A DNA stretch of 64,000 nt from Thalia democratica (Eukaryota), in the NCBI GenBank assembly GCA_965202585.1, contig OZ241826.1, positions 71,610,001-71,674,000 of the forward strand. Reading direction: 5' to 3'. The stretch's first letter is position 1; the number at the start of each line of letters is the position of its first letter. The notes beneath the pieces are model-generated. The model made no database searches, was not told the origin of the DNA, and saw only the letters and a program-made list of their open reading frames with translations. Below are positions 12,008-59,700 of the stretch, in pieces. The position numbers and the translations under genes are program-made.

Positions 12008-13411
12008 TTACTTAAAGCATGGCTGTACAATTTCATCCCAAGCTTTAACCCATGTTCTGCCTCTAAATCTATCAACTTCAAGCCTGAACTTGTTGGCCTT
12101 TGTGCTTTTAGCCTCTGTCATATCAACTAGCAAATCACATATTTGCTGTTTGAGCTCATTGGAGTTTCTAAAAACATAACCATTTTCACCATGGCGCACT
12201 AGCTCATCTAGACAATTAAAATCAAGTGCAAGAACTGGAAGTTGTGAGCCAAACATGTCAACAACTTTCATTGGGAGGTCCAAACCACTAGAAGACGAAT
12301 GCAAACTCACACCATAATCTGATGAAGCAAGTATCTTGGGATAATCATCTGCTTCAAGCCACGGAGTAACAATCTCAACATGATTCCAATTTTTTGTTTC
12401 TATAATTTTTTTGTAATAGGCCTTTTTAGGTCCTTTACCAGTAACAACACAGAGCACATCAGGCAACTTGTTTGATGTTATTTCACTGTTTTCTGCATCA
12501 AACTTGTCTAAAGCATCAATAAGAATTTGAAAATCTTCATCTTCAGTCCAACTGGTACTGCTAATTAAAATTACAGGACATTTTTTCCTACGTTCAACTT
12601 CATCCTTTTCATTAACAAAAGTAATTTTATTGTTAGACAGTTCATCATTGCTTTGAAACTGGGGATAGTTTTGAGCAAGTTTTTCAAACAAATCATGCTT
12701 CTCTCTCAAAGATATAGGTTTGAATAAGGGCCCTGGTCTATCATGCATAACTGATGCACTTATTTTCCAGTTTCTATACAGATCATCACACATAGCTTTT
12801 GTTACACACAAATTAGCAGAAGAAAGTTGACCCAATAATTCTTCATATATTTTAGAAGCTCTTACCAAAAGATGATCAATTCCTAATTTCAAAGCAAGAA
12901 TGGAATAGCCATAGTTATGCCAATCAATAATCAGTTTGCTTCTATTTACCATAGAAAAAAGTAAAGAAACTAAAAGCCCAGGAATGCACGGGGGATTTTG
13001 AATAAGTATGTACTCAGTAGGACCAATATTAAACAGTGTTGCGGACAAATAACATGCTTGTAGTATAAACTTCTCAACATATGCTATTACTTTTGGGCGA
13101 GAATTTGAAACAACAATTTCTTTCACATGAGCCTGTTGAATTTTTTCACAGTTCATAATAGAGCTGTGAGGCGTTGATCCTGCAAAACCAACCAAGTTAA
13201 CATCGTAATTGTGAGACGCAAGAGAAAGTGCATGGTACTGCATACGAGGACTTCTTCCAATATCACCCAAAACTACCACTGCCACTCTGTTCTTGCCCAG
13301 TTCAAAACACCATACTATAATTCTCCAAACAAATACTACTCCAAAAAAACAGGCAACAAACTTAACCACCAAAAACAAGAGGTAGAATATCAAAGTAAAC
13401 AATGTTATCAT
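12008..13411 (-). CDS. ALG1: Chitobiosyldiphosphodolichol beta-1,4-mannosyltransferase (GT33), 467 aa, single exon
   Basis: Uninterrupted ORF with an N-terminal hydrophobic anchor and ALG1 motifs VVLGDIGRSPRMQYHALSLA, IQNPP, IIDWHNYGYSIL, SSTSWTEDEDF, VTGKGP, GVSLHSSSSGLDLPMKVVDMFG and ELVRHGENG. Confidence 0.96.
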   Translation of the reverse strand: MITLFTLIFYLLFLVVKFVACFFGVVFVWRIIVWCFELGKNRVAVVVLGDIGRSPRMQYHALSLASHNYDVNLVGFAGSTPHSSIMNCEKIQQAHVKEIVVSNSRPKVIAYVEKFILQACYLSATLFNIGPTEYILIQNPPCIPGLLVSLLFSMVNRSKLIIDWHNYGYSILALKLGIDHLLVRASKIYEELLGQLSSANLCVTKAMCDDLYRNWKISASVMHDRPGPLFKPISLREKHDLFEKLAQNYPQFQSNDELSNNKITFVNEKDEVERRKKCPVILISSTSWTEDEDFQILIDALDKFDAENSEITSNKLPDVLCVVTGKGPKKAYYKKIIETKNWNHVEIVTPWLEADDYPKILASSDYGVSLHSSSSGLDLPMKVVDMFGSQLPVLALDFNCLDELVRHGENGYVFRNSNELKQQICDLLVDMTEAKSTKANKFRLEVDRFRGRTWVKAWDEIVQPCFK

Positions 13412-21282: not shown

Positions 21283-24200
21283 TTAAAAGCAAAGTGCACC
21301 AACACAGTCTTCAATGTCTATTATGTTGTTTCCACTATCTACAAATTCCTCATGTTTTTCTTTTAAACTTCTATGAAAATTACTTACTATGTAGTTAGCT
21401 TCAGTACTATTGAAGTTATACCTGTCAAGTTTATTTCTTATAAAATTTGTAAATGATAAAAATAAGTTATAATAATTTTACGGTTTATTTTGAGAGCGGT
21501 TTATTCGCAAATACCCAAGCTTTTGTAGTTATTTATAATTTGAAAATACTTAAAACAAAAAAAGATATCTTTTTTATTTAAAACATAAATAAAGTTTAGA
21601 TAGATGTTTATATAGATAGATAGTTGTTTTTGAAGGTTTATTCGACAGTAAATTAAAACTTGATTGTACGAAAATTTTTTTTAAATAAAGTTGTCTATAA
21701 ATTCTAAAGACAGTAAAAAGTAATTGATCCACTTCCGGTAAAGAATGTACTATTTGGTAAAAAGTTTAAACGTTTGTACGCTTTTAGAGATAAGTTTTAA
21801 AATGTTTTCGATGAAAAAAATAAAATGAATTAAAAATGTTTTAAAGGTTACAAATTTTGTAATAAACCATTTCATTATAAAGTTTTTTTTTAGTAGCAAA
21901 ATAGTACTTTAAATTTTCAACAATAAATAGATTTGATATGAACCTTGTATCAAGCTCATTTAAAACTTTTTATGCTAGCATAAAATAAAATTGTCATAAA
22001 ACATAATATTTTCTATTCTTACAACTAACTGTATTTTCATGATCGACAAGTCAATAAAATATGATGAGTTGAATCTCACAAATGTATTAAAAAACACTTG
22101 ACTCCGAAAAAAGTCTGTTTCATCGAAAAATTCCCAACCCTCATCGAAATCTTCCATTGATTCCTCACCAAATAAACTTTTCCTTAAACCGAGGAGTTAT
22201 AAATTTGAATAAGCATTAGTTTGTAAGAATATAAAATTTCTTTTTGAATTAATTGTGTTATACAGCAAAAAATAAAGAACTCATCACGAAATTGAAAGTA
22301 TTACAAATATTTATTTTGCTATTTTAGAACGAACTTTTGGAAAACTTTTTAAAACTTGTTTTGTTCATTTAAAGTTACAAAAAAAAATTTGATTTAAAAA
22401 GTTTCTGATGAACTTCTAATAAAAGAGCTTTATAAATTTTTTAGAGCTTAGTAATCTTTTTGAAGTTAGTAATTTAGAAAAAAGGTTATTTTAGTACTTA
22501 AGTATAAAAAACGTAAATCTTTTTACATGATGTAAATTTAACTTATTGTCTTTTATTAATGTCTATAAACATGCTAGTTATTTTTTCCTTTAATACTATT
22601 ATGCTGTAACCCACCGCATAACCATACATCCGTGCTTTCTAGCAAAATGCTTCAAGTAGCTTTCGTGATCGCAATAATGGACGATTCCGTTGTTCCAAAT
22701 CAACGTTGCTATCACTTCTAATGGATCGTATCCTTGCAACCCCGGGATATGTTCTGTTATTTTGTTGACTATCCCATCACAGTTTAGTCCAACTCTTGCG
22801 TCTAGCTGACGTACAAAGTCATAAACGATCTCGTAGTACTATTAAGCAAAAAAGGAAGTTTAAAAGTACATCATTTAAAATAATATTTTTTTAAAAATTT
22901 AGTTTTGTCATTTTGGAAGTTTTTGAAGGAAACATCAAATTAAAAAAGTATGTGAAAAATGTTTATGTAAATATATTACTGATAATTTTTAAATTTTATC
23001 TTAATTTTGTTTTAGGCTCATAATTTTTCACAAACTTAATCATATAAAAGTTTTGTAAATTAATTTTGATAAAAACTTATCATTTTCACTTGATCGTATT
23101 TATTATGTTAAACTTTTGCTTAGAAAAATGATTAACATAATACCATTACTTTTGTGACAAACAAATTTAATTTTGACCTCACTTAGAAACCTGTCATATG
23201 GAAACTGAGGCCTTAATTTTCTTTTAAGAAATTTATCTTTAAGGAAAAACTTTTCTGTCGTCTCTTTTATATTTTTCAAAAAGTAATGATTACTAGTAGG
23301 CATGCTCAACCAAGGTTTCAACCATCTTTCGCTCAAGTAGTTGTGATTGTCCGAAGACTTGCAGTGCTGTTTAATTTATAAAAAAAAATTCTAAAGAAAT
23401 TTTAGATGTGTTGCAACAAAGTTAATATCAAATCTTCGCTCGTATTTTGTTGTATAACTTAAACAAATATATTTTGCTTATATTTTTTATTCGAACAAAA
23501 ATACAATTACCTTTTTTTTGTTATATTTTAAGAAGTTTTATTAAAATACTAATTCGTTTTTGTTGTACTTTCGTAAAATATTTTGTATTTAGAATTAATT
23601 ACAAATCAATTTGAATTTTAAGTTACAAAAGTATGATAAAAAATAACCTAAAAACAAAATTAAATTATTAATAATACTAGTTTTTAAAACAATTAACATA
23701 CAAACAAAGCCTTGTGGTTTATATATTCCGTGAACCTTGTGTGCGGTTCAAGCAACTTTCTCAATGTGCTTTTATCTGCGAGATATTCTCTGACCAAAGT
23801 GGCCATTAAAGTTGGAAACATGAAATGAACGTGGTTGTGGGCATTACCCGGTGCATAGAAAGTCAACTGGACCTACATAAATAGTTTAAAAAAGTTTTGG
23901 TACATGTATAAATAAGTATAACAATTTTTTAATACTTAACAATAAAGTTAAACTGATAAATAAATCAGCAGAGTAATTATTTACTTAAAAGTAGTTTAAG
24001 TTTTGAACTTAAAGTTGTTTTTATTTACACAAGATTACGAGTAAACTGTTTTTGTTTTTATATTCATGTTTATTAGTGTAAATCTAAAATGAATGTTTTT
24101 AATGTTAATACACAATAATGTTTTTTCTTTATAAAGCAAGTTTTAAAAAGAAACAAAATTGATCATAAAGTATTTATTTAAAACTAAAATATTTAGCTTC

Positions 24201-27200
24201 AAACAACGCTATATTAGAAAAATTGTTACTTGTAAAATTTATTGACATTACTATAAAGAAATAATCAATAAAAATACAAAAATTAAGCATTATTTACTAT
24301 CTAATTTAAAAATGATTGAAAAAAAAAGTGCTTTTACTTAACCGATAAAATTTAGGTAAAAACATTTTGTCTAAAAAGAATTGAATTAAACTAACTTGCG
24401 CATGGGCTTTTGCAAGTCTCCATTTTTCATGTTTAGTTGTGTAAACATTGCATCTTCGATCTTTGAGTGATATTTCCTTGTTTTTATGAATCCTCAGCTG
24501 CTTCAGATCCCAGTAGAAGCCATCAAACAGTTTATAATCTTCAATGGGAAAATTCAAAACCCATTTTATTGAGGTGTCCGGTTCATCTGTAAAAGGAAGC
24601 AATAGTTATTATGACTGTTTAATAAAAAAAAAAAAAAATCAAAGGTTAGTTTTTAGAAATACGTTAAGCTAATGTAATAGCAAAATAGTTATTTTTTAGA
24701 AACAATATTAAAGTAAAAATTCTAGGCATCGCAATAAACAGTTTAACTTGATTTTTGTTTTAAATATTATAATAATTTTGATTTGGTATAAGACTTTTTT
24801 TGACGATTAGACAGTAACTAGCAAATGTTACATAGAGATAAAAGCTTTGTGATATGAAAACTTGTTTTTAATTAAAAAAGTATACAAAATTTTTCAGATA
24901 TTAGAAAAAAATTATCAGTTTCTAAAATTTTTAAAGGTAAACTATTAAACTCAATGTTTATCTTACTAAAATAACAAAATTTAATACCTTAATTTTAGGT
25001 GCATAGGGCTAAGGTCATTAAGTTAAATACAACTAATTTAATTACACACTAATTTAATATGCTCTTTTCAATTTTTCTTCTTTGATTTAGACTAGTTTTG
25101 CTTATAATCTTAACAATGTATAACTTATCACACTAACTGTAAAATTTAAATACTCTCTATGTTAAAAAACTCTTTACATATGAACTTTTTAGGAAATATA
25201 GCTACAAAGCTATAGCAAATGTTTATTGTAAGTTTTTTTTGTTACCACAACATCGTTTTGTTTTACAAATGTGTATTAGCTTTTAACTTTTAAAAATTTC
25301 TAAGAAAGATAGTTTCAAAACTTTTATAATAATATACAAGCTAGAATACTTTTCAAAATGTATAAATATACTTTATTATGTTAAGATTTTTTTTAAATGT
25401 TAGTATATAATTAAATAAACTATTTAAAAAGTTTATAACAAAACCTAAAGTGTTTTTTTAGTTTTGATTAACTTCACGCGCGCTGAAATAACAAAACAAC
25501 TTTCAGTTTTTCTTACCAGCAGAAGGTGGCTCAAGGCATCCGCACAAAGTTGTTTTCATGATGGACTTGTACAGCTGTTGGTCGCCCACCAGTGGGCACT
25601 TCTGCTTCCCGCCAACCAGCTTGGTGAATTCCCACAAGCTGCCAAAAGACACTTCAAATATGTAAGTAGAGTTTCGGTGCAGAAGGAAGTCTAAAGTGGA
25701 AGAAGATGACACCTGAGACACTTCTACCATGGGCCCTCCTTTGTATTTTGAGAACTTTGCTGTTTAAAGTTTGTGTGTGACAGTCATAATTTATTAGTAC
25801 TATATTTAATTCAAATTTTACTAAATAAAACTGTTGTTAATATTTTATTATTGTATAAAGTCGTTAAAACAACCTTTTGAAAATAATAATTTGATAGTCT
25901 TGCAAAAAAGACTCATACTTATTTATTAAAAACGATATTTAAAAACTAGCGACACTTTTAGTTGCTAGCTTAATTATATAGCTCTATAAGTTTACAAATT
26001 TGTAAAATCTAGAAAACAAATCAAATATGTTGAGTATTTAAATTTTTTTTTTACGTTTTTGTTTTGTTCATATTATAATATCAAACATGATTTACAACTA
26101 CCTAATCATACTATGTTGGTCTAATATCAATACGCACTAGTGCTAATAAACCTTATTTTATAACTTTACTAATAAACTAACAATATAGTCCAATAAAATA
26201 ATTATTACTTCGTCAAAAGTACATATAAAATTAAAAAATAAAAACTACAAAGAACAATCAATAATATTTATTCAAATTTTAAGATTGATTAAAAAACTAG
26301 TTTGTAGTAGTTGTTAATAAGAAGCTAATGGATATATTTTTATAAATTAATTTTTATAAGATATGGAACAATCTAAAATACACGTTTAAAATTTTATGAA
26401 GTCATTTAAAATAAACATAATATCAAAAAAACATAAGCCTTAATACTTTTCCGGAAAATTTAAAGCTTAGTTTTTTAAAACTTTTTCAACAAATAACTAA
26501 TGGATCAATATCTTGTAACTTGATCCTATAAGTGATGTCTTGAATTTAATATCTAAGTAGTAGCAGTACAAATTAAGATACTGATTTGAAAATGTTTACT
26601 TAACTGTAGTTAAGACAAGTATGTATTAAAATACTTCTTTAAGAAAAATACAATTTGAACCAAAATTTTGCTTTACTCGAAGCCACTTATAAACTGACAG
26701 ATTGTTTTGAAAGATAAGAGGTCAAATTTGAAAAAGTCTTATACTTACAACGTAACTTATATTTTTCAGTTCAGTTTTCAGCGTAAACATCTTTTGTAGA
26801 AATTAAAAAATTCGCGTAAAACATCTGTAATTTTTCAAAAATTTGAGGAAACTAAAATCAATTGCTAGATAGAAAACTAAAAATTAATCGATTAAGAAAT
26901 CGTGGCGCCAAAATGCATAAAAACTACATGTCGAGTTTGTTAAACTATATGTCGAGTTTATGCAAAGAAACGAATGCATAACAAAATCGATTTAATATTT
27001 TGCATTTTGTTTAAAGTTTTAGTTCTTTTATACTTAAGCTAAAAGTCTAGTTAAAATTATATAGGAACAAGTTATACTTACAAGAAGTTAGTTTCTTCGT
27101 CAACACCTCTATTATTTCAACAAACAGCATCAAGTGCAAGAAAAGGAACCATAACAACGTCGGTAACAGTCCAATTGAAAATACTGTTAATTGCTTTATT

Positions 27201-27235
27201 TTACTACATAGAGTTGTTCGAAGTTTTTGTTTCAT
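21283..27235 (-). CDS. Divergent lipoxygenase-like protein, about 487 aa. Exons: complement(join(21283..21421,22030..22182,22615..22838,23178..23366,23702..23872,24396..24586,25517..25759,27082..27235))
   Basis: The spliced translation gives LOX-ordered motifs: KWRLAKAHAQ (WxxAK), HNHVHF...LRKLLEPHTRFTEYINHKA, FPYDRFLSEYYEIVYDFV, IWNNGIVHYCDH (H-x3-H), and a C-terminal FHRSLKE...CVGALCF*. All seven introns are GT-AG and phase-consistent (1464 nt). Exon 1 is the least certain. Confidence 0.8.
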
Positions 27236-56700: not shown

Positions 56701-59700
56701 TTTAAACACATTGCTATAAACATAATCTAATTTTAATAGCCAAATCTAGAAAAGTAACTTTTTAATGTTGACAGGTTAATTAAGTGCGTGTATGTTTATC
56801 TTAAAAATTTTGAAACACGATTTTAAACTATGTCCAACTCTGAAAGTTTTATGAATTTTACGGGTTTTAATAGGCGTTTTTTTAGATTAAACAGTGAACT
56901 TTTGAAGCTTTTCTATCTAAAAAACTAAACTTAAACTTGCATTTTTCAATAGACAGAAGTAATAAACTAATTAATAATTTGCACCACAAATACATAATAA
57001 TTACATTGCGGTGGCCTGTTCTAATTGACAATGCAATAGATATGCCAAACTGCTGGCGTTATCAACGAAAACGATTAGTGTTGATATTAGCAGGCGATAA
57101 TTGATGAGGTAGTGTGCAAAACATAAAACAATGTCTTTTGAGTACATTTCAAAAACTTTAATACCGCACAGCTTACATTTCGTTTTACCCTTTTCTTTCG
57201 AGTGAAGCTCACACTAATACTATAATACCTCCAACAAATGCTTGAAAATTTTTAATTTTCTTTTTAACTTTCAGATTTTTTACCACCATCGTTACTTGTT
57301 GTAAATCTTTCGTTCAACGCATTTAAGAAGATTGACAACTTGGCGTTTGGAAACAATGAAAAATTGCGAGTGCTTAACGTGAGTAATAACCTTGCAACAA
57401 GTTCGGAGTCTATTTTCGACGATCGAACTTTTAAGCCGATGGTTAATCTGAGAAACCTCGACTTATCAAACACCTACTGCGGGTCCATTCCCAGGAACGC
57501 GTTTTCATTTTCAAAAAAGCTGCAAAAGTTAAACTTGAGGAACACGTACCTCAGAAAGCTTCCTTTGTTTAAAGCAGCTAGCAAGCAAACTTTTTCTAGT
57601 TTAGAAAACGCCAGCATCGGAATCGAAAACGAAACTTTAACGCGAGCCGAGTGGAATAACCCGGTCTTAAAAGTCTTGATCTTGTCAAACAATAGACGCT
57701 TGAAGCTCAAACAAACTTTGTCCGAAGTTTCGTTTCCGCCGAGCTTAGTTCACTTGGACTTGAGCGGAGTTCAGTTTCAAACAATTAACTCAAAAGTTTT
57801 CTCCAATTTGAACAACTTGGAAGTTTTACGCTTGAACAAGTGCTACATAACCTCGATAACATCGAATGCGTTATCTGGTTTGGACAGTTTGGTGGAGTTT
57901 TCCGCTTTCACCAACGGGCTGAGAAAAGTACCGGGCCTGCCGAAAAACTTAAGAGCTTTGAATTTGTCAAACCACAGAATAACGACCTTAACAAATAGCT
58001 CAATTAAACCTGGCATTTCAGACCTCAGCAAACTTACGTCAATCGATCTGAGTTTGGGAACAATTAAAGAAATATATGATTCAACTTTCTCTGAAATGTC
58101 AAAGCTTGAAACATTGAATTTGTCGACGAACCATATTTGTACCATAACAAAAACGACGTTTAAAATAAAGTGAGTTTTTATATAAACTTTTTGCGTAATG
58201 TAAAAAAGTCCTAAAATTTAAAGCTCTATTGTTTTGCTTAATTCTTAAATGTTATGAATTAAAATTAAAACTTAAAATTTATAGGTTTTTCAATGTAAAC
58301 TAAATCTTTCAATCAAATTTAGTTTTAGTTTCGTTGTTTAAAAAATATTACACGTATTGAAGCTTTAAAAGTTTAGATTTTTGTAAATGCAATGCTTTTA
58401 ATTTTTATCAATACAAAACCATACTATTATATGAGTAAAGCAATTAAAGCACTTAGAGGTAATTAAAGATGGTTTTATAGACAAAAAAGTAATTTTTATG
58501 TAGTAAACAAAGGAAATTATAGTTTATTTTACAAAATTTAAGTTTTGTAGCAAACAAAATATAGACGAGTACTTTTTTGAATTAACTTACTAATTAAAGT
58601 TTTTAAAATGTTCGTAACAATTTTATTCATTTAACAGTATTATTTTAAACTTCAACTTTTAATTTTACTATATTAAGTCTAAAATAAGTAAATGAAAGTA
58701 CCTTTTTAAGTATATATATGATCTGTTTTGATGTTTAAATTTAAATCTGTTATGATGAACCCGGTTTACCCAACTTAAAACCAATTAAGTCTTTTTGAAG
58801 CTATTTTTCACGTTGACCAGTCAAACTTAAAATTGAAAAGCATACTTTCACACATCTTTTACTTCCACGCACAGCAATCAATCAAACTTAAAGTCGCTGG
58901 ATCTGTCGAGCAACAGGATAAAAAAGCTGCAAGCCCATCCGTTCAGCGGCCACGGAAAGCTCACCCAGTTGCACCTGGAAGGCAACAGAATTGCAAACAT
59001 CGACGACACGACGCTACACGGCTTAGAAGGTCTTCTGCGGCTCGACGTGTCCGACAACAACTTGAAGAAAGTGACACTTGGAGCGTTCGAAAGCCTGTGC
59101 AATCTGCAAGTGAGAGAGATTTGTTGTATTATGTTGAATTGGCGCGTGCGTGCTGTGTATACAGACCAATACACCGTTTTCAGTCGTAAGAAGATTTGCT
59201 TGACGTTAATGACAATAACTTTTTTGCCAGGTCGAAACAGCTTAATCGTTTTAAAAGCCTATAACAACACAAAGTTGTATTGTGCAAATTAAATTTTCCT
59301 TATTAAAAAAGCTTTTACAGCATTTTTTATTTATTTACTTTTTTATTGTGATTCCGACCACTTTAAATCATTTTATTGTATACCGCGCAAACCTATTATG
59401 TAAGTCAAGTCATACAAGTAGTACTTGTCAAGATGTATGCGAAAAATAACATTAAAGGCTTGATTTTATGCTATTAAGTATTTATTTTGACTCATACACT
59501 TGAACGCTTTCACTTTTTATTTGATATCTATGACGTAAAAACAAAGCAGTATGTGTATAATAATCGTAACGAATTAAAGTGATGTATACTTGTTGAAATA
59601 AGAGTGTATAACTTTTTAGTGATTTATTTCAACATACGTTTTTCACTTTTTAACCAAGTTCAAATGTATAGCTATTCAGGATAGATTTGAAAACAAAATT

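Follow-up and report, generated by a model that had tools for sequence, protein, structure and literature searches.

A lipoxygenase-fold gene with altered ligand spacing in Thalia democratica and its relatives in tunicates and Myxococcota

The stretch of Thalia democratica DNA analysed here (the window: 64,000 nucleotides of contig OZ241826.1, positions 71,610,001 to 71,674,000 of the forward strand, 26% G+C, 0 gaps) carries an intact, transcribed and selectively constrained gene on its minus strand at 21283-27235, with 8 exons that encode 487 amino acids (aa). The protein belongs to a distinct clade of the lipoxygenase (LOX) superfamily and is predicted to have a complete catalytic-domain fold. 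From sequence comparison and structural models, we hold with moderate confidence that this is a membrane-anchored lipoxygenase-fold gene of a clade marked by the motif H-x3-H-F, that its product would be an active metal-dependent lipid oxygenase, and that its origin would be bacterial. Few non-heme iron enzymes are as well studied as the lipoxygenases, whose central-helix H-x4-H is taken as a signature of the family. A clade that extends from bacteria to chordates and keeps all ligand positions, two of them with one residue fewer in between, is a natural test of how much variation in coordination geometry the fold tolerates.

An earlier note on this DNA had described a lipoxygenase-like enzyme with a rewired metal site, over an interval that covers exons 3-8 only; two more exons lie upstream (27082-27235 and 25517-25759). 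The strings it quoted are all present, on six open pieces of the minus strand (21283-24605): GNAHNHVHF and INHKA lie in exon 4, HYCDH in exon 6, and ALCF followed by the stop codon at the end of exon 8. The coding sequence of 1464 nucleotides comprises 487 codons and a stop, and every intron has GT-AG borders, with phases that match. RNA contigs from a marine metatranscriptome (run X1), which are 95-99% identical to the window, support the spliced model. One contig joins 27082-27178, 25517-25759, 24394-24586, 23702-23870, 23178-23366 and 22713-22838, and another joins 22028-22064 to 21283-21419 and continues into the 3' untranslated region (UTR). The junction between exons 6 and 7 is the sole one without RNA support, and it was placed on the basis of intron phase and a collinear alignment of homologues (GCMVMRKSLFGE versus GCIAMRKPLVGY). 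Compared with contigs from three runs, the window shows synonymous and non-synonymous differences numbering 13:2, 6:0 and 12:1; given that nearly all of them are synonymous, the reading frame is under purifying selection. An A-rich simple repeat occupies 24612-24649, within the intron that directly precedes exon 3, and sequencing reads seem to be cut there.

The fold was assessed by structural prediction for P0005, a homologue from Clavelina. AlphaFold2 (AF2) modelled this protein with a predicted local distance difference test score (pLDDT) of 68 from nine sequences, and with a pLDDT of 91.9 and a predicted TM-score of 0.91 from twenty. The structural match that the earlier note had called for was found with both models: for the lower-confidence one, the top 50 Foldseek matches were all lipoxygenases and VIA-align gave a Z-score of 21.8, and for the high-confidence one VIA-align gave a Z-score of 26.0 with a root-mean-square deviation (rmsd) of 3.0 Å over 413 residues, all 50 among the matches listed being lipoxygenases. 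The superposition pairs residues 46-481 of the model with 138-663 of human 12-LOX, which is the catalytic domain after PLAT. The ESM Atlas model reached TM-scores of 0.78 and 0.77 to lipoxygenase clusters, with short bacterial lipoxygenase-like clusters nearest. A search of the Atlas with exon 6 alone returned unrelated ATP-grasp N-domain clusters below 0.9 and was discarded, the piece being too short.

Profile comparisons point to the same superfamily. A profile of tunicate proteins (A1) searched against the PDB found lipoxygenases in 12 of its 14 matches (best E-value 0.015, no solved lipoxygenase above 17 bits), and the profile with bacterial relatives added (A5) found them in all 52 of 52 (best E-value 5.9e-6). 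By hhalign, the tunicate-only profile matched four bacterial lipoxygenases with a probability of 90%; its alignment was gapped and lost ligand 1, and was rejected in favour of ungapped or one-deletion alignments. The wider alignment matched bacterial lipoxygenases with a probability of 96.8% (E-value 2e-10, 184 columns); in it, each side-chain ligand position receives one of the four His once a single residue is deleted between the first two. The mapping of the second site came only from this wider alignment. An ungapped profile scan placed both sites on the true ligand windows (z 8.1 for the first, and z 5.4, the top window, for the second). Single exons searched against Pfam and, by phmmer, against the PDB gave no matches, being too short, and PF00305 (gathering threshold 23.6 bits) matches 4 of 20 clade members at E <= 1, the best at 4.6e-4. 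The divergent lipoxygenase-fold family that the earlier note had suspected is thus upheld by the P0005 model and by the profile and hhalign matches.

Conservation at the metal site was counted over 20 homologues from tunicates and bacteria in P0005 numbering; the bacterial sequences fall into a close (bacA) and a more distant (bacB) Myxococcota group. The long ligand helix starts at the 3' end of exon 3, which encodes LAKAHAQ, and its AK anchor aligns with the W.LAK of lipoxygenases. Within this helix H201, H205 and F206 are each at least 90% conserved, and the middle His of HNHVH varies, being Asn, Thr or Tyr in other tunicates and Trp in bacterial relatives. The conserved pattern is therefore H-x3-H-F in place of the canonical H-x4-H; MAFFT and hhalign both delete one residue between the two His. 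This bears out the altered first helix of the earlier note and removes the middle His of its H-x-H-x-H from the conserved features. Three independent alignments of this helix (HMMER, hhalign, and MAFFT with the ungapped profile scan) agree. His208 of the window protein (H201 in P0005) stands at ligand position 1 and His212 one residue before canonical ligand 2; in the ungapped alignment the conserved Phe occupies the canonical ligand-2 column, which is equivalent to one deletion between the ligands and one insertion just after them.

In the second helix, H363 and H367 are invariant and D366 is at least 90% conserved. The H-x2-D-H of the family aligns with HAAVN of bacterial enzymes and HSSNH of porcine 12-LOX by hhalign, HMMER domain 2 and the ungapped scan, and HYCDH matches the third and fourth ligand pattern H-x3-(N/H/S), in agreement with the earlier comparison to the His/His site of mammalian 12/15-LOX. 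The chain does end in Phe, as had been read from ALCF: the last residue of the family is Phe or Tyr instead of Ile (or Val), and in the P0005 model, which runs to 481, it superposes on the C-terminal Ile of solved enzymes (chain ends 663, 676, 673, 839 and 1066). All tunicate and bacA members terminate at the identical position with Cys-Phe or Cys-Tyr, C480 being at least 90% conserved as Cys in tunicates and bacA and Gln in bacB. The Ala of INHKA, correctly assigned to the Coffa position, aligns with Ala416 of human ALOX15B; every tunicate member has Ala there, and the close bacterial relatives have Gly. As the same positions are conserved across the 20 tunicate and bacterial homologues, the quoted motifs are not chance occurrences. 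Judged from these alignments, the five canonical ligand positions would all be occupied, with four His and, as putative fifth ligand, the terminal carboxylate, which is the set used by mammalian 12/15-LOX. The protein is less odd than first thought, since its predicted ligand set is complete and only the spacing is altered, and more interesting for its bacterial ancestry and its conserved clade.

Ahead of the catalytic domain, the hydrophobic N-terminal helix is a predicted membrane anchor in place of the PLAT domain. The exon 1 helix lines up with its N-terminal counterparts in the family; in the AF2 model of P0005 the helix comprises residues 2-41, and residues 1-44 consist of this single long hydrophobic element. 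No PLAT or C2-like beta-barrel was found, the structural alignment of P0005 beginning at about model residue 45 and at about residue 138 of the reference chain, after PLAT. According to the model, the protein is a PLAT-less catalytic-domain fold on a predicted membrane anchor, and the positive charges ahead of the helix weakly suggest a cytosolic N-terminus. If this is true, it would be to our knowledge the first known animal lipoxygenase-fold protein without PLAT and with its own membrane anchor.

We infer from the ligand set and the models that the site most likely binds iron, possibly manganese. Polyunsaturated lipids would be oxygenated at the membrane via the usual lipoxygenase hydrogen abstraction, and because the protein has its own anchor, it would probably act on membrane lipids or at the membrane surface. 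The metal site nevertheless has features of its own. Its ligand spacing is unlike that of any solved lipoxygenase matched, and Asp366 and Cys480 (P0005) have no canonical counterpart (Val, and Ser/Asn/Ala, respectively), with Asp366 clade-wide and Cys480 present in tunicates and bacA. The clade has also long been separate from canonical lipoxygenases, and with about 15 canonical lipoxygenase loci in the genome a redundant function is not needed. These points would suit an enzyme of the same fold and clade with different chemistry, such as another metal (Mn, Cu or Zn), a non-lipid substrate, or hydroperoxide isomerase or epoxyalcohol synthase activity, which is the activity of eLOX3. However, four His and a carboxylate are the ligand set of the iron 12/15-LOX, the Coffa-position residue and the PH.RFT..IN motif lining the substrate channel are kept, and no sequence feature indicates one particular alternative; such a change of chemistry is the less likely reading, yet a real alternative. 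We also regard as unlikely a membrane-anchored oxygenase from a myxobacterium-like donor that binds a different metal or performs chemistry outside that of characterised lipoxygenases. There, the compressed H-x3-H, the adjacent conserved Asp and the chain-end Cys would constitute an altered site, and the gene would have been kept and duplicated beside the canonical loci for doing what those cannot.

The earlier note had also allowed for a pseudoenzyme, which would be a membrane protein that has the lipoxygenase fold and binds lipid or protein partners, with neither metal nor catalysis. Such a protein could go unrecognised by Pfam, as this one does, and a paralogue on C6 that lost H-x3-H indicates that the scaffold can persist without the motif. 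Against this, the five ligand positions and the exact chain end have been kept from Myxococcota to tunicates and in two subfamilies, and purifying selection acts on the coding sequence, which together are the pattern predicted by a working metal site. A pseudoenzyme is consequently quite improbable.

The gene is a member of a wider tunicate family. A phmmer search with exon 6 against 1.8 billion representatives recovered true relatives of 480-590 aa. Among its hits, P0001, P0002, P0006, P0010, P0011, P0015, P0016 and P0019 were dismissed as false positives, being tandem-repeat proteins, none with H..DH, that scored because scores sum over many stretches. In a word-indexed search the relatives proved to be ascidian proteins (from Clavelina, Phallusia, Styela and Ciona) recorded as uncharacterised, and UniRef names one of them 'Lipoxygenase domain-containing protein'; genome annotations say 'uncharacterised' because Pfam misses the family. 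Aligned end to end, the window protein is 34-38% identical to tunicate proteins of a short subfamily, within which it falls with support of 99/99, and 26-29% identical to those of a long subfamily. Both subfamilies are present in Clavelina and in the T. democratica genome, where the tunicate profile found five loci: C1 (the window gene), C2:4855xxxx, C8:4765xxxx, C9:1919xxxx and C6:2071xxxx. The fifth of these paralogues (C6:20711934-20713756; L023:3860-4249) has lost H-x3-H-F, reads ...AKAHVQAQLTVYGSLVLGARTRLKGG... and has no intron at LAKAH.Q; it may represent a pseudoenzyme or a pseudogene copy. We define the clade by an N-terminal hydrophobic helix, H-x3-H-F, PH.RF(T), H-x2-D-H, an end in C-[FY] and a length of about 470-610 aa, and the window protein has every one of these features. 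Another protein, P0012 (251 aa, Logan), is a divergent partial member with VLHSSDH and the end AQSICF that forms a lone long branch inside the clade of bacA and tunicates, and it could extend the organism range of the family.

In the same genome, a PF00305 scan found about 15 canonical lipoxygenase loci, the window locus not among them, and these canonical genes carry H-x4-H and H-x3-N. At the Coffa position, the canonical lipoxygenases at L001, L002, L004, L006 and L017 (C2 and C9) have either Ala (INQKAR) or Gly (INQKGR), and at one canonical locus (L018:1837-2052, minus strand) the open frame ends in IPNSVGS, not Ile, as a candidate chain end. Full-text literature searches returned no description of the family or of its locus names, and a term search of a 2026 review of bacterial lipoxygenases gave nothing on an H-x3-H type. 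What is new here is the five-locus family, the occurrence of both subfamilies in ascidians and the close Myxococcota relatives of like architecture. Ciona has members, which makes the function testable there.

Given that the nearest clusters in the Atlas were short bacterial lipoxygenase-like proteins, 301 Myxococcota genomes were scanned with the tunicate profile. One of these (G100) contains a 471-aa open reading frame (ORF) that matches A1 with an E-value of 1.4e-39 (136 bits) and has an N-terminal hydrophobic helix with Y..LLP, followed by GHAWSHFWLP, LLAPHTRFT, VAHAADH and the end LIRSICF. Five further such proteins occur in public data, one of them from an Archangium metagenome-assembled genome (MAG), so that bacA, a rare group, has six members in all (P0026-P0031). 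The group bacB, from two other Myxococcota genomes, shares H-x3-H-F and H-x2-D-H; its chain end is S-[IV]-Q-Y. All bacterial loci are intronless with a G+C content of 62-70%, and the G100 copy lies amid bacterial genes on a long contig. There (G100:C16; L039:5759-7903, minus strand), a cyclic nucleotide monophosphate (cNMP)-binding NTE/patatin phospholipase follows the lipoxygenase-like gene on the same strand.

A tree rooted on canonical bacterial lipoxygenases has the form (bacB,(bacA + tunicates)), with support of 97-98/95-96 for the inner clade, within which bacA and the two tunicate subfamilies form a polytomy, and of 100/100 for the split of the whole clade from the canonical enzymes. 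This arrangement makes it likely that the gene passed from a bacterium to an early tunicate and was then furnished with introns and duplicated. The acquisition would predate the divergence of the sampled tunicates, and intron gain and duplication of the transferred gene would have come afterwards. With cellulose synthase as precedent, the gene would then be one more candidate case of tunicates co-opting a bacterial gene. The fold and the divergence in the first lipoxygenase-like reading thus hold, and the myxobacterial kinship and probable transfer had gone unseen.

Several results weigh against a membrane-anchored lipid oxygenase of bacterial origin. The PF00305 match proposed as a check in the earlier note did not appear, either on the exons of the gene or, at E <= 1, on the full-length tunicate relatives, although the structural and profile evidence outweighs this missing match. 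The C-terminal half searched alone gave no lipoxygenase match by profile against the PDB, and by hhalign it reached a probability of only 0.9%, though the alignment was collinear. The predicted structure is that of P0005, 35% identical to the window protein, and not of the window protein itself. The patatin/NTE phospholipase was rejected as functional context, as it is not conserved and is missing from two other homologue-bearing contigs. Finally, the tree covers the clade and canonical bacterial lipoxygenases, and in it tunicate monophyly is neither supported nor rejected (support 65/53; approximately unbiased test, p 0.44), and therefore the direction of transfer is not proven.

The latter points, the polytomy of bacA with both tunicate subfamilies and the fast evolution of the tunicate genes would accord with vertical descent from animal lipoxygenases, with loss of PLAT and fast divergence, the Myxococcota copies reflecting tunicate-to-bacterium transfer or contamination. 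However, bacB, with its H-x3-H-F and H-x2-D-H, branches outside bacA and the tunicates (100/97 and 97/95), and the bacterial genes have the composition and intronless structure given above and sit amid bacterial genes on long contigs. In addition, the bacterial protein reaches 136 bits with the family profile, versus at most 17-29 bits for animal lipoxygenases in the PDB, and the nearest ESM Atlas clusters are bacterial. We therefore consider vertical descent very unlikely. The exons and motifs of the gene are collected in Table 1.

Table 1. Exons and protein features of the lipoxygenase-fold gene, in window coordinates
Feature	Position	Strand	Details
Exon 1	27082-27235	-	Start codon 27233-27235, first Met of the open frame; 27082-27178 present in X1 contig, joined there to exon 2
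Hydrophobic N-terminal helix, aa 16-42	27110-27190	-	Preceded by five Lys/Arg; Kyte-Doolittle maximum 2.27 at aa 27
Exon 2, aa 52-132	25517-25759	-	Lipoxygenase-fold domain begins; both junctions in X1 contig, AG/GT and phases fit; A1 profile match at C1:71635530-71635766, E-value 3.7e-13
Exon 3, aa 133-196	24396-24586	-	Junctions in X1 contig; A1 profile match, E-value 6.4e-11
Exon 4, aa 197-253	23702-23872	-	Junctions in X1 contig; A1 profile match, E-value 2.2e-24
First metal-site helix, HNHVHF	23822-23839	-	Candidate ligands His208 and His212, then conserved Phe213
PHTRFTEYINHKA in exon 4	23708-23746	-	Ala251 at the Coffa position
Exon 5, aa 254-316	23178-23366	-	Junctions in X1 contig, including weak donor GTCAAA at 23177
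Exon 6, aa 317-390	22615-22838	-	5' junction in X1 contig; 3' donor GTGGGT at 22614 inferred (phase, alignment)
Second metal-site helix, HYCDH	22665-22679	-	His370, Asp373 and His374 (exon 6)
Exon 7, aa 391-441	22030-22182	-	3' junction in X1 contig; 5' acceptor inferred (phase, family alignment)
Exon 8, aa 442-487	21283-21421	-	Stop codon 21283-21285; X1 contig spans into 3' UTR
Chain end, GALCF	21286-21300	-	Cys486, then Phe487 bearing the terminal carboxylate

Elsewhere in the window, an uninterrupted 467-aa ORF on the minus strand (12008-13411) has a glycosyltransferase group 1 domain (PF13692, 6e-12; PF00534, 1e-11). It is unusual for an intron-rich animal genome of 26% G+C, and may represent either a retrocopy or a further gene of bacterial type. 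On the plus strand, a 277-aa open piece (57340-58173) contains leucine-rich repeats (LRR_8, 3.4e-25) and is probably one exon of a leucine-rich repeat gene.

Among known systems, the mammalian 12/15-lipoxygenases (rabbit ALOX15 and porcine or human ALOX12; PDB 2p0m, 3rde and 8ghb) are alike in fold (Z-scores of 25-26 and an rmsd of 3.0 Å over about 410 residues), in predicted ligand types, with four His, a C-terminal carboxylate and H-x3-H on the second helix, and in the Ala at the Coffa position. They differ in their H-x4-H, C-terminal Ile, PLAT barrel, lack of a membrane helix and recognition by PF00305, and sequence identity to them is 14-17%. The PLAT-less bacterial 'mini' lipoxygenases (Cyanothece CspLOX2, 5med; Nostoc mini-LOX; Pseudomonas PA-LOX, 5ir4) are similar in the absence of PLAT, in length (about 450-570 aa), in fold (Z-scores of 24.8-25.4) and in bacterial ancestry. 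These enzymes, which are also PF00305-positive, have H-x4-H, H-x3-N and a C-terminal Ile, and the combination of H-x3-H-F, H-x2-D-H and a Cys-Phe/Tyr end occurs in none of those named.

The uncharacterised Myxococcota proteins P0026-P0031, one of which is 'hypothetical protein JNG84_04405' of the Archangium sp. MAG, share the length class (471-472 aa), the N-terminal helix with Y..LLP, H-x3-H-F, LL.PH.RF, H-x2-D-H and an end in ...LIR[SAC]ICF, and differ in being intronless, in a G+C content of 68%, in a Coffa Gly and in an identity of 20-25% to the tunicate proteins. Tunicate cellulose synthase is a known case of gene transfer from a bacterium to tunicates, and the gene described here resembles it as a tunicate-restricted animal gene with bacterial nearest relatives that has introns and is integrated in the genome. 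The two belong to unrelated protein families, and for the lipoxygenase-fold gene the transfer is suggested by a small tree.

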